Of a DNA stretch of 64,000 nucleotides, positions 2,527 through 36,463 are shown piece after piece (the stretch's first letter is position 1; each line of letters starts with the position of its first letter). Below the pieces are notes generated by a model. The model saw nothing but the letters and a program-made list of their open reading frames with translations. It was not told the DNA's origin and did no database searches. The stretch is from the sequence record MT135026.1. One strand, 5' to 3'. The translations under genes were made by a program, and so were the position numbers.

Positions 2527-4837
<2,311 letters not shown>

Positions 4838-31131: not shown

Positions 31132-31587
31132 ATGGCATATTCTGGCAAATACGTTCCAACAAACAAATCGAAATACAAAGGCAACTATCAGAAAATTGAG
31201 TACAGAAGCTCATGGGAATTGTCTTTCATGCGCTGGTGTGACAATAACCCGCATGTAGTTCGCTGGAACTCTGAAGAAATCGTTATCCCGTATGTTAGCT
31301 CGGCTGACGGCGGTAAAAAACGTAGATATTTCATGGACTTTTACGTGAAGTTCAGTGACGGTCGAGAATTCATATTCGAGATCAAACCCAACAAAGAAAC
31401 ATTGCCACCCGAGAAACCACAGAGACTTACTGAAAAAGCTAAGAAGCGTTTACTGAAAGAGATATATACGTATCAAGTAAACCAAGACAAGTGGGCTGCT
31501 GCGATTAAATTCGCAAAGCAGAAAGGATGGCAATTCAAAGTCTTGACTGAAGTCGGACTTCGTAAACTAATAGGACTGAGAGTGTAA
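31132..31587 (+). CDS. 4: Head completion nuclease gp4 (TnsA-like)
   Basis: MAYSGKYVPTNKSKYKG, YRSSWE, WNSEE, RYFMDF, EIKP. Confidence 0.96.
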   Translation: MAYSGKYVPTNKSKYKGNYQKIEYRSSWELSFMRWCDNNPHVVRWNSEEIVIPYVSSADGGKKRRYFMDFYVKFSDGREFIFEIKPNKETLPPEKPQRLTEKAKKRLLKEIYTYQVNQDKWAAAIKFAKQKGWQFKVLTEVGLRKLIGLRV

Positions 31588-32186: not shown

Positions 32187-32933
32187 ATGGCAATCGGAAT
32201 AGATGTTAAGAAGTTCTTATCTCAAATTACAAAGAACGACTTAGCCAGACAAAACTTGTATGCGGTGCGATTTGCATCGCTACAAGATACAGCAAAGCAG
32301 TTGATGAATACAGGTGAGTCATTTTTGAATGCTGACTTTTCAGACATCAAAGGCGTAGGGGTACAAGATGCCCTTGCGTCAACTGCTTCTCTTTTCGGCT
32401 CAGGGTTTGAGTTCGAACGAAACATCGGAATGATGGTGAAATCAGTTAATATCCCAGGGTCGTCATACGAAACTGACGTAGATAAAACTCGACGTAAGCC
32501 ACATCACGTAGTAAAAGCGAAAACCGACGAAACAGTGACCATGTCATTGTATCTGTCACCAACACACCCAGAACGTAAAATGTTACTTGGTTGGTTTAAG
32601 CAGATTTATTCAAATGATTCTGCTCAAGTCGGATTCTTCTCGAACTATGCTCGAACAATTGAGATTTACACATACAATCGTAACGCAGAAATGGTTACGA
32701 TGACTAGCTTGAAGAATGCGTATCCGATTCGAGTAGGTGGGGTTCAGTTAGGATACGAGAATAACAACGCAGTGGCTGAATTCGAAGTCGAGTTTGTTTA
32801 CGAAAGCGCAACATACATGACTGAAGATCTATCAAGCACAATCTCGGATAAACTGGGTATTACTCAAAACTTCGAGAAAACATATAACAGCTTTTTCAAT
32901 ACAGGCGCTGAAGCCATTTCAGGTCTATTCTAA
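32187..32933 (+). CDS. 54: Baseplate tail tube initiator gp54
   Basis: gp19-like fold motifs DLARQNLY, VKSVNIPG, AYPIRVGGVQLGYE. Confidence 0.8.
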   Translation: MAIGIDVKKFLSQITKNDLARQNLYAVRFASLQDTAKQLMNTGESFLNADFSDIKGVGVQDALASTASLFGSGFEFERNIGMMVKSVNIPGSSYETDVDKTRRKPHHVVKAKTDETVTMSLYLSPTHPERKMLLGWFKQIYSNDSAQVGFFSNYARTIEIYTYNRNAEMVTMTSLKNAYPIRVGGVQLGYENNNAVAEFEVEFVYESATYMTEDLSSTISDKLGITQNFEKTYNSFFNTGAEAISGLF

Positions 32934-32944
32934 GGTAAAACATC

Positions 32945-33793
32945 ATGACTAAAGCATTTGATATTAGCGTACTTGCTGCGCCACAATATACTGTAAAACT
33001 ACCATCAACTGGTGAAGAAATTAAACTGCGTGCAATGCTTGCAAAAGAGCATAAAGCATTGCTTATCGCAAATGAATCTGATGAGAAGATTGACGCAATC
33101 GAACAGTGTCTTGAAAACTGCATTGTATCTGACATCAAAATGGATGACCTAACGGTTGGTGACTCTGAGTATCTGTTTCTGCATATGTATATGAACAGTA
33201 ACGGTGTGACTAACATTCAAGCAGAATACAACTGCTGTGCTCCGAAGTCAGAAGAAGAACTTCAAAAGCTTTCTGAAGAAGAAGAGGCTGAACTGGCTAA
33301 ATCGGCTGATGATATTTTTGCCGAGATTATGAATCAATCAAACGAAGAAGCGATTGAAGCAGTGTTTGCACCTGAGAAGCACTTATGCGGTGAACGTATC
33401 AGAACCAATATCGACTTGAAAGCTGCATTCGTGCCTGAATTTACAGGTGAAGATACAGTTCGAGTCAACCCAAAAGTTGTTATCAAACTCCAACACCCGA
33501 CAATTCGAGTGTATGAGAACAACGACCCGAATACACCACAAGGTCTGTTCAATATTGCGGTTGAATCAATTAAAGAAGTTCATGTTGGTGATACTGTTTA
33601 CACCAAAGAAGAACTTGAAGAGCAAGGTCAGCTTGTGAACATCATGGGCGAACTTGATACGGCAGCATTCAAAAAAGTTCAGACATTCGTCGATTCAGTT
33701 CCACGAATTACGACATACGTTGACGTTAAATGTCCTAAGTGTGGTAATCACGAGAAAGTTACGCTAAGAGGCATCGAAGATTTTTTCGTATAA
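32945..33793 (+). CDS. 26: Baseplate hub assembly protein gp26
   Basis: PQYTVKLPSTGEEIKLR, KEHKALL, C-terminal CPKCG and GIEDFF. Confidence 0.88.
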   Translation: MTKAFDISVLAAPQYTVKLPSTGEEIKLRAMLAKEHKALLIANESDEKIDAIEQCLENCIVSDIKMDDLTVGDSEYLFLHMYMNSNGVTNIQAEYNCCAPKSEEELQKLSEEEEAELAKSADDIFAEIMNQSNEEAIEAVFAPEKHLCGERIRTNIDLKAAFVPEFTGEDTVRVNPKVVIKLQHPTIRVYENNDPNTPQGLFNIAVESIKEVHVGDTVYTKEELEEQGQLVNIMGELDTAAFKKVQTFVDSVPRITTYVDVKCPKCGNHEKVTLRGIEDFFV

Positions 33794-33960
33794 TGCTCGG
33801 TAGATACTCACTCGAAGAGTATTACAAGGAAAACTTTGCCATGATCACTCATGGCAATTTTTCTCTTCACGACTTAGAAACGATGGTTCTATTCGAGCGT
33901 GAAATCTATGCCGCACAGCTTATACATTACATTCAAGAAAAGAATAAGGAACAACAATAA
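33793..33960 (+). CDS. Small gp51-like baseplate hub chaperone (55 aa)
   Basis: Not in ORF track; MLGRYSLEEYYKENFAMITHGNFSLHDLETMVLFEREIYAAQLIHYIQEKNKEQQ; TAATG-coupled on both sides. Confidence 0.85.
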   Translation: MLGRYSLEEYYKENFAMITHGNFSLHDLETMVLFEREIYAAQLIHYIQEKNKEQQ

Positions 33961-35930
33961 TGGCGGCTGACGACAAGAAAATGAATGAGATAATCGGAAG
34001 ATTAGATCATATCATTCTCCAACAAGAAGACCGACCTGAAGTTTATACGATGCAGCGCGTCGCTCGTCATATCAACAACATTGATATTACGACCACGTCT
34101 ATGCTCGAAACTATGCAGTCGGTGTTTAAAACAAACGAAAAGGCGGTGGCGCAGCAAAAGAATCTGTTTCAGCGCGTTATCGAAAACTTTGAGCAAACTT
34201 CCAATAAAGTTCGTGCTTCGATTATATCACTAACGGATATTATCAAGACTACTCTTGACTTTAAAGGACATTTGTCTCGTATTGATCGTGGCATTCAAGA
34301 AATGCGCTTAACTGCAAAAATGCAGTTCGCACGTATGCAGGAGGGCTTTAATCGTTGGTTTGAACGTCTGATCTTTAGAGTCAACGACATGAAGCGCGTT
34401 ATAGGGCTTCAGAAGACGGCTGCCGACGATTTAAACAGTTTTCTACAGAACGGTGCGGGTAACAACGCCCCGTTGACTGTGGGCTTTATAAGCGCATTGT
34501 ACAAGAAAATTTTCGCGTATCAAGTCGTTACCGAAACTCGCAATCGTAAGACTGAACAACTACGCTACAAAGAGAATATGAAAGTTCAGCGCAATCAAGC
34601 TAGTGATCTGCGACGCATCGCGAATCACCTTGCTGGTGAAAAACTAGGATGGATTGCTAAATTATTCAGACTTGTCGGCGTTGGGTTAGTGATGTTAGGC
34701 GGTCAATTGGTGACATTCAGTACATCAATGGCAATGGCTGCTTCGACTGCAACAAAATTCGGAACGCTCGGTAAAATCGCATCTAACATTCTTCTAGGGT
34801 TCGGTAAGTTTAGTAAAGGAACAGGTAATATAGTTCAAGCTCTTGCTACTGATATGAGCGGCACCATAAAAGGATGGATGTGGACTGTTGTTCGTCAATT
34901 ATTCTTAGGTCTAGGTAGAATGGTTGCGATAATGCTAAACCCAGCGGCTCTAGTTGCAATGGTTGCAGGTTATGGTATTTACAAAATCTTCGAAGAAGAG
35001 CTAGACAGAATCTTCGGCGCGCTGAAGAACATTTTTAGCGACCCCGAAAAACGAGCAATGCTATTCAGTATAATCTCGAACTGGTTCACGGATATGGTTC
35101 GAGGGATTGGTGAATGGTTTGGAATCGTCGGCGAAAACATCAAAGACGCTGTACCAGAAGGCGCAGTTGAGGGAATCGTATCTGGCTTCGAGAAGGTAAC
35201 TTCTTTCGTTAGAAGTGCGTTTCAAATGTATGTCAATGCGGTTAATAAGATCATTGCAAGTTGGCTATCAATTCCCGACTCATTCAGACTTCTTATGTTA
35301 GCAATAGATGACCTAATGTTAAACGTTAAAGAGTTCGTCGTGAATGCATTAAATGCACTACCTGATTTTCTGAAGTCAGAAGGCATGGAGAAGTTCATTG
35401 CTGGCGCAGACATCGAAGGCAACCGAGCGCGTATTGACGCAAGCAAGGCTGAAGTCAAGGACAGACTCAATGCACGCTATCAAACTGACTATCTAGGGAA
35501 AGCAGGGGATATGATCGTAGACGGTGCTAAGAATACAGCACAAGCGGTTATAGACGGTGCTAAGAACGCTGCCGATGCAATCAAACGACCAGTTGAGTCA
35601 TTAGCAAGTTCAACTGAATCGCTAGACAAGTTCCTAGCGGCTGAAGTTGAGAAGAAACAAATGCAAGAAGACGCTATCGTTGCTGCTGAGAGACAACGTA
35701 TGATTGAAGAAGGGTTGATTAAGCCATTCCAAGAGATTAAACGTTCAGTGATCTTAGAAGCTGTCGCAGCGCGTGAAGCAGCATACAGAGCAGCACAACA
35801 AACAAAAGAAGTTGGGACGAACTTCGTCAACAACGCTGTAAGCTCAGTGCAAAATACAACCAACTTCACTCGCCCATTGACTACGAGTGGTGAAGCTAAG
35901 ATTCCGTCTACAAGAGGTAACGTGAACTAA
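33960..35930 (+). CDS. 29: Tape measure / gp29-like hub protein
   Basis: 656 aa, helical with central hydrophobic Gly/Ala segments; follows 26/51-like genes. Confidence 0.65.
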   Translation: MAADDKKMNEIIGRLDHIILQQEDRPEVYTMQRVARHINNIDITTTSMLETMQSVFKTNEKAVAQQKNLFQRVIENFEQTSNKVRASIISLTDIIKTTLDFKGHLSRIDRGIQEMRLTAKMQFARMQEGFNRWFERLIFRVNDMKRVIGLQKTAADDLNSFLQNGAGNNAPLTVGFISALYKKIFAYQVVTETRNRKTEQLRYKENMKVQRNQASDLRRIANHLAGEKLGWIAKLFRLVGVGLVMLGGQLVTFSTSMAMAASTATKFGTLGKIASNILLGFGKFSKGTGNIVQALATDMSGTIKGWMWTVVRQLFLGLGRMVAIMLNPAALVAMVAGYGIYKIFEEELDRIFGALKNIFSDPEKRAMLFSIISNWFTDMVRGIGEWFGIVGENIKDAVPEGAVEGIVSGFEKVTSFVRSAFQMYVNAVNKIIASWLSIPDSFRLLMLAIDDLMLNVKEFVVNALNALPDFLKSEGMEKFIAGADIEGNRARIDASKAEVKDRLNARYQTDYLGKAGDMIVDGAKNTAQAVIDGAKNAADAIKRPVESLASSTESLDKFLAAEVEKKQMQEDAIVAAERQRMIEEGLIKPFQEIKRSVILEAVAAREAAYRAAQQTKEVGTNFVNNAVSSVQNTTNFTRPLTTSGEAKIPSTRGNVN

Positions 35931-36463
35931 TGAAAAACTTGACGATGAAGAATAATTTCCGAATCGACATCCCAGATAACAACGCAACACAAACGTTTCA
36001 GTGGCAGATTCAAACTGCCACTATCCCGGGTGTTAATATGGAAATTGCAAGTATTACACGAGGTCCCAAATATGCCAAACTAGCGAACAACCATGTAGCA
36101 GGTTCTGGTACATCTTACGATGACCTGTCGATTCAGTTTCTAGTCGATGAAGAAATGCGTACTTATGCTGAGTTATACAAGTGGTTAATCACCATGAATA
36201 ACCCAACTGGTGCTAGTACAAGTGACGGGATTGTTCCAGTTACTATGTTGCTTCATGTTTTAGACAATAACAAAGACAAGATTGTTGCAACGTATCGCTT
36301 TGTCAATGCGTTTCCAAAGTCTCTAAGTGCTATTGAATGGAACTACACTGAAGCAGGTGATGTTGAAACTGTAACGTGTGATGTTGAGTTTGAATACTCG
36401 TACTTTGAAATGATCCATAAAGTCGATGGCAAAGAAGAAGTCATCACACCCTATATGGGTTAG
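35930..36463 (+). CDS. 3: Tail completion protein gp3
   Basis: ATIPGVNM, YDDLSIQFLVDEEMRTYAELYKW, AFPKSLS, VEFEYSYF. Confidence 0.92.
   Translation: MKNLTMKNNFRIDIPDNNATQTFQWQIQTATIPGVNMEIASITRGPKYAKLANNHVAGSGTSYDDLSIQFLVDEEMRTYAELYKWLITMNNPTGASTSDGIVPVTMLLHVLDNNKDKIVATYRFVNAFPKSLSAIEWNYTEAGDVETVTCDVEFEYSYFEMIHKVDGKEEVITPYMG

Follow-up and report, generated by a model that had tools for sequence, protein, structure and literature searches.

Is the 55-codon ORF found between gene 26 and the putative tape-measure gene of this phage a gene of its own, or is it the end of a longer gp26 that is made when ribosomes slip one base back just before the gene 26 stop codon? The window, i.e. the whole stretch of 64,000 nucleotides of record MT135026.1 that was analysed, is from a KVP40-type Vibrio phage, the region being 100% identical to phage phi-pp2 and 99% identical to KVP40. 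The features discussed here are listed in Table 1. On the plus strand the gp54-like tube-family gene, gene 26, the 55-aa ORF and the gene for a 656-aa protein follow each other, an order that fits a G/GT-type layout. The counterpart of the protein encoded directly 5' of gene 26 is annotated gp54 in phages nt-1 and CZ01. The gp26 protein is clearly related to the PF12322 family (T4_baseplate; E-value 3.1e-49, 168 bits with the gathering cut-off at 24.5, over positions 2-218 of the 219 in the profile) and also matches the phrog_150 baseplate hub family. The phrog_634 match of the 55-codon ORF covers only profile positions 59-113 of 121. Stop-start overlaps are frequent within this gene cluster (33960, 35930), and no T4 late promoter motif (TATAAATA) was found between 31 and 37 kb. 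In KVP40, the 177-aa protein encoded at 35930-36463 goes under the name gp3 (tail completion / sheath stabilizer); its match in the present analysis is to the tube family.

Table 1. Features of the gene 26 region and its surroundings, numbered from the first nucleotide of the window.
Feature	Position	Strand	Basis or remark
gp4, head closure	31132-31587	+	TnsA-like endonuclease N-terminal domain PF08722 (E 1.4e-23)
gp2, DNA end protector	from 31587	+	
gp54-like tube-family protein	32187..32933	+	PF06841 and phrog_45; directly 5' of gene 26
Gene 26, short chaperone form (TAC-N), 282 aa, C-terminus ...RGIEDFFV	32945..33793	+	PF12322, phrog_150
Shine-Dalgarno-like AAGAGG, candidate dnaX-type stimulator	33766..33771	+	9 nt upstream of heptamer
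Slippery heptamer T_TTT_TTC (X_XXY_YYZ, gp26 frame)	33781..33787	+	
Predicted -1-frame extension after the slip, gp51-C or 'T-like' tail (RIMLGR...KEQQ)	33787..33960	+	57 codons and stop
Zero-frame TAA of gene 26	33791..33793	+	one codon past heptamer
Annotated 55-aa gp51-like ORF	33793-33960	+	phrog_634 'baseplate hub assembly catalyst', E 3e-20
Hairpin, possible weak stimulator	33800..33825	+	12 nt downstream of heptamer, further than usual
656-aa tape-measure-like protein	33960..35930	+	position, size, language-model lead
177-aa tube-family protein	35930-36463	+	PF06841 (E 2.7e-8), phrog_45, TIGR02241

The 3' end of gene 26 reads GAT (33779-33781) TTT TTC GTA TAA, and the ATG of the small ORF (33793-33795) overlaps with the stop codon in the sequence TAATG. 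This ATG is one base back from the gp26 frame, i.e. in the -1 frame. A slip of one base on the heptamer would give the reading TTT TTT CGT ATA ATG CTC and a product in which ...EDFF is followed by RIMLGRYSLEEYY. From 33748 to 33957 no stop interrupts the -1 frame, which ends with a stop codon at 33958-33960. The ORFs of at least 100 aa on both strands of the window, about 18,000 codons in total, contain 18 Phe-Phe pairs, and the only in-frame T_TTT_TTY among them is the one at the end of gene 26. A previous reading of the letters of this DNA (the sequence-only reading) had pointed to an in-frame heptamer near the end of gp26, to a -1 frame entering the small ORF without any stop, and to a TAATG overlap that would also allow coupled initiation. 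The heptamer and the open frame were both recovered from the letters, and the overlap, which may permit some separate initiation of the 55-aa ORF, is present. That the next gene is tape-measure-like, another claim of this reading, is borne out in part. No match of the 656-aa protein to T4 gp29 was obtained with Pfam, NCBIfam, HMM or BLAST. Judging from its position, its size and a language-model lead (T4_Tape_measure PF25671 as the nearest named clusters, score 0.95), the 656-aa protein is probably the tape measure.

The junction was then compared in 92 non-identical sequences from Vibrio, Aeromonas, Cronobacter, Stenotrophomonas, Caulobacter and cyanophage relatives. The sequence-only reading had proposed to look in gp26 orthologs for TTTTTT(C/T) with the downstream ORF in the -1 frame, and this is indeed the arrangement that they have: the first Phe codon is TTT in all 92 junctions, the second one is TTC in 91, and the base preceding the two codons is T in 92/92, provided by six codons (AGT, TCT, GAT, AAT, GCT and GGT) for five amino acids. 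Since codon choice is fixed at three synonymous positions, amino-acid constraint cannot account for the heptamer. Third positions of the codons around it show an entropy of 1.1-1.9 bits over the same 92 junctions. None of the 70 other Phe-Phe pairs in the same genes is encoded by the heptamer, and, given how these genes use their codons, about 0.13 T_TTT_TTC would be expected per sequence. The distance to the stop is also constrained, with a gap of exactly one codon in 90 junctions and of two codons in the other two. Ten KVP40-like genomes, down to about 75% nucleotide identity, have kept GAT TTT TTC while nearly all adjacent synonymous sites vary. At larger distances, six relatives whose gp26 is only 26-36% identical (Aeromonas avDM6, Vibrio EniLVp02, cyanophage S-CAM1, Stenotrophomonas DLP_6, Cronobacter S13 and Caulobacter Cr30) have in common a gene 26 ending in NNT TTT TTY, one codon and a stop, and in each of them the -1 frame contains a homologous ORF. 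Eighty metagenomic cyanophage-type loci present the same gene 26 end and -1-frame ORF. The slip site and the frame relation are thus kept across at least six host groups, in every one of the unique junctions. On these counts, the conservation of the heptamer is not due to chance. Sequences of the H_HH.U_UU.Y class, including U_UU.U_UU.C, are highly shift-prone in Escherichia coli, in which U_UU.C outranks U_UU.U and U7 is avoided (PMC4066793). This ranking fits with the fixed final C of the heptamer.

A second line of evidence comes from phage T4 and its close relatives, which have two genes where KVP40 has a single PF12322 copy. Both T4 gp26 and T4 gp51 match PF12322, the latter through its residues 1-201 (E-value 3.9e-52). 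The remaining part of T4 gp51, its last ~48 residues, aligns with the small ORF, and the alignment is continuous across the junction (DVFKLL in T4, DFFRIM here). A virtual fusion of gp26 with the tail aligns end to end with T4 gp51, junction included, and the end of T4 gp26 is that of the short form. T4 gp51 thus consists of a gp26-type domain and a ~50-aa C-terminal tail, as in the predicted fusion. It is encoded by one continuous ORF in a gene separate from gene 26, whereas the two parts are here in different frames. From this homology the predicted long product is gp51-like, but the gene is not. Full-length gp51 is present in about 1,380 records, from T-even-type, RB49-, RB43- and 44RR-type phages and from Acinetobacter phages. 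These two-gene phages constitute a natural control: they need no slip, and the slippery codons are not kept. The heptamer is found at the end of gene 26 in none of seven such phages; the Phe-Phe codons are TTC TTT in T4, and the other two-gene phages have Phe-Leu or Phe-Val.

It is of note that gp26 of the two-gene phages (T4 gene 26, at 2803-3429 of the T4 locus used, and five others) extends 3-5 residues beyond Phe-Phe, with ends such as FFELL, FLKIL, FLKVVG and FVEVL. These ends resemble the -1-frame or gp51 reading (F-K/R-L-L) and not the zero-frame end of the frameshifting phages. Genes 26 and 51 are divergent in T4. In Escherichia phage RB16 (610-3187), genes 54, 51, 26 and 25 are on one strand with a full-length gene 51 directly before gene 26; the duplicated pair was rearranged within the two-gene group. 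The gp26 ends of the two-gene phages suggest that genes 26 and 51 of T4 both go back to an ancestor fused in frame, one copy of which was later truncated.

The fold of gp26 was predicted with AlphaFold (pLDDT 76), the model showing an N-terminal domain of about 90 residues. Using an exhaustive structural aligner on 48,161 chains, the best matches of residues 1-96 were 3fgx (Z 8.0), 2ob9, which is the tail assembly chaperone of HK97 (Z 7.2), and 3klu (YqbN; Z 6.8), Z values of 7-8 being at the edge of the safe range of this aligner. The next match was at Z 4.9. In the three chaperone-fold matches, 83-88 residues are aligned with a sequence identity of 7-10%. We take 3fgx and 3klu to be prophage chaperone-like proteins. 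With Foldseek the gp26 model gave no significant match, 2ob9 having the highest probability, and a sequence search of the PDB with gp26 gave no match. The model therefore argues with moderate strength for a tail assembly chaperone-like fold in the N-terminal ~90 residues of gp26. Compared with 2ob9, 3klu and 3fgx, gp26 has about 190 further residues, including Cys pairs that resemble a zinc ribbon. KVP40-type gp26 also presents an acidic insertion of about 50 residues at ~100-150, in which the model is of low confidence (pLDDT below 50 for residues 120-146) and which is not found in the other aligned lineages.

Elements that could stimulate a slip were searched on both sides of the heptamer. 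Upstream, 82 of 91 junctions have a Shine-Dalgarno-like 4-mer whose first base is 12-15 nt ahead of the heptamer. Its Glu codon is GAG in 64 cases and GAA in 6, against 36 GAG and 77 GAA in two nearby Glu columns. In the window, AAGAGG is located 21 nt before the ATG of the small ORF, a distance too large for the ribosome-binding site of this ATG. A Shine-Dalgarno-like stimulator about 10 nt upstream of the dnaX heptamer was reportedly described by Larsen et al. in 1994, and the spacing of the candidate found here is the same. The E. coli dnaX site and the present one share a heptamer, such an element at ~10 nt upstream, and a zero-frame stop close by. They differ in that the dnaX shift operates on A_AAA_AAG with a strong downstream hairpin and shortens the protein, whereas a tail would be added here. 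Downstream, the 70 nt past the heptamer are more stable than shuffled sequences (z -2.9 in the window, mean z -2.1 over 93 junctions). RNAalifold on the region downstream of the heptamer in 87 junctions gave no consensus structure across lineages, and one helix register shows modest covariation; for these reasons we do not claim a universal stimulatory hairpin. The GAGG of the Shine-Dalgarno-like element (9-10 nt upstream) and the stop one codon downstream may together constitute a conserved stimulator in the T4 superfamily. Another structure, a 9-bp terminator-like hairpin at 33836-33857 on the plus strand, is located within the tail ORF, 48 nt past the heptamer, and is followed by TTTTTCTCTT (T-run up to 33867). 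It is kept in KVP40-like relatives, and Vibrio phage D479 has at the same place a hairpin of other sequence and a T-run, which looks like compensatory change. This hairpin could act in attenuation, or as a pause site ahead of the tape-measure gene.

Could the small ORF be translated without any frameshift, as a separate gene reached by termination and reinitiation at TAATG, with a T-run that does nothing else than encode a conserved Phe-Phe? Besides the TAATG of the window and the other stop-start overlaps of the cluster, this is favored by the ATG that about two thirds of the relatives have within 4-8 codons of the slip site. But a start codon (ATG, GTG or TTG) is missing from the -1 frame in 30 of 91 junctions, both upstream of the slip site and up to 8 codons past it, and these phages keep the full tail nonetheless. 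Vibrio phage D479, Aeromonas avDM6, cyanophage S-CAM1 and Cronobacter S13 are examples. In D479, ACG replaces ATG. A -1-frame stop (TGA in D479) directly precedes the T-run in D479, avDM6 and EniLVp02, and the whole tail is nevertheless conserved. At the first -1-frame position past the slip, Arg is found nearly always, although the same bases give Ala, Gly, Val or Asp in the zero frame; this points to selection on the -1 reading ahead of any start codon. Reinitiation is further opposed by the lack of a ribosome-binding site 5-10 nt before the ATG, by the synonymous choice fixed at three positions of the slip site, by the non-slippery codons in which T4-type genes keep Phe-Phe or Phe-Leu, and by T4 gp51, in which the tail functions when fused to a gp26 domain. 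As the only route to the tail, reinitiation thus appears very improbable, and on these alignments the small ORF is dependent on gene 26. Reinitiation may still add to the frameshift: in the ATG-keeping phages, the window phage included, a free 55-aa tail may be made as a third product. The small ORF has been missed or shortened by annotators or gene callers in D479, avDM6, S-CAM1 and S13. The records of these four phages show, before the next large gene, an unannotated gap of 90-185 nt or a 30-aa stub at the position of the ATG-less tail.

The same long protein could also result from the RNA polymerase, if one U were added to the U6 run in a minority of the mRNAs. The extra U gives an identical product, and homopolymer runs are known slippage sites (PMC5009743). 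In 91 of the 92 junctions the run found here has exactly six T's and then a C, and it is never longer; it is always in X_XXY_YYZ phase, and the Shine-Dalgarno-like element at a dnaX-type spacing points to the ribosome. Known bacterial sites of transcriptional slippage are runs of about 9 or more. With a run that is short and whose length is strictly held, we give this explanation little chance. It is harder still to believe that the arrangement came about by chance or is inert, with the small ORF as the decaying remnant of a gp51 gene. The ORF is short, as such a remnant could be, but the tail is 30-50% identical across phage families without any stop, and the heptamer is conserved with it. 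The tail is also collinear with the C-terminal ~50 aa of T4 gp51 and is predicted to form three helices (pLDDT 71).

Taking the observed signals, their conservation, the homology and the fold together, a -1 ribosomal frameshift of the lambda G/GT type very probably fuses gp26 to the small ORF. The sequence-only reading had proposed this fusion, and the conserved heptamer, the ATG-less ORFs, the in-frame fusion represented by T4 gp51 and the chaperone-like fold all speak for it. We infer the slip itself, its rate and the binding partners of the products as follows. In this KVP40-type phage, gene 26 would encode the tail (tape-measure) assembly chaperone. Stopping at the TAA, most ribosomes would release the 282-aa short form. 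A minority would slip one base back with two tRNA-Phe on TTT TTC (33782-33787); the pair would re-pair on TTT TTT, and CGT ATA ATG and the following codons would then be read. A helical tail of 57 residues would thereby be added, giving a minor long form of about 338 aa (gp26 and the gp51-C tail). On the model of lambda G/GT, the two forms would both coat the 656-aa tape-measure protein via the N-terminal chaperone domain that they have in common, and the rare long form would use its tail to recruit components of the tube or the hub. The finished virion would be expected to contain neither chaperone form. T4 and its close relatives would make the same two forms from the paralogous genes 26 and 51. 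T4 gp51 is essential and absent from particles (PMC3004832). As far as the homology carries, T4 genetics supports the idea that both forms would be needed and that neither would be present in virions.

The parallel with lambda, where the -1 frameshift of G/GT was reportedly established by Levin, Hendrix and Casjens in 1993 and by Xu, Hendrix and Duda in 2004, concerns the layout and the predicted products. In both systems, the tape-measure gene (here putative) is directly preceded by two overlapping ORFs, with a heptamer a few codons before the stop of the first ORF, and in both a -1 shift gives (here, is predicted to give) a short major and a long minor chaperone. However, the lambda heptamer is G_GGA_AAG whereas it is U_UUU_UUC here, gp26 is larger than its lambda counterpart (282 aa, with domains added past the ~90-aa chaperone fold), and no sequence similarity is detectable between lambda G/GT and gp26 or its tail. 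That gp26 and the gp51-like ORF are the equivalents of lambda G and T, as the sequence-only reading also suggested, is nevertheless supported by the comparative evidence, the gene order and the fold. We find it doubtful that the following three proposals all hold together: that GAGG and the nearby stop act as a stimulator across the T4 superfamily, that a free 55-aa tail is made by reinitiation, and that genes 26 and 51 of T4 come from an ancestor fused in frame.

The kind of feature described here is already published. According to two papers that cite it (PMC10885494, the PRFect paper, and PMC12846349, a phage paper from 2025), the study of Vladimirov, Gautam and Davidson (Virology 2022; 566:9-15, PMID 34826709) recognized gp26 (TAC-N) and gp51 (TAC-NC) as the tail assembly chaperones of T4-like phages. 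As cited there, it also reported poly-T -1 frameshift signals in the TAC-N genes of T4-like phages, with both a short gene and a long fusion gene in others. The gene arrangements found here follow this pattern exactly. The sequence-only reading had held such a frameshift to be undescribed for T4-like phages; this was contradicted by the credit that both citing papers give to the 2022 study. In a GenBank record of 2020, gp26 and gp51 of Acinetobacter phage Octan were named 'tape measure protein assembly chaperone'. The value of the present analysis is thus one of confirmation and annotation, given what the citing papers credit to the 2022 study. The dnaX-like Shine-Dalgarno-like stimulator and the free 55-aa product may be new relative to that study as cited. 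The GenBank records of KVP40, phi-pp2 and relatives contain no frameshift annotation. For these two phages and dozens of relatives, the small ORF is given as a separate 'baseplate hub assembly catalyst', truncated or omitted, and the long product should be annotated. A comparison in 2010 noted that gp51 of cyanophages and vibriophages is devoid of its first ~200 residues and left this unexplained (PMC3037559); the predicted frameshift would explain the absence of this part of T4 gp51. A review in 2016 considered G-T frameshifting as conserved in long-tailed phages 'except T4' (PMC5009743). T4 has long been listed as an exception, and with the frameshift predicted here the T4 superfamily would follow the near-universal frameshift rule of tail chaperones.
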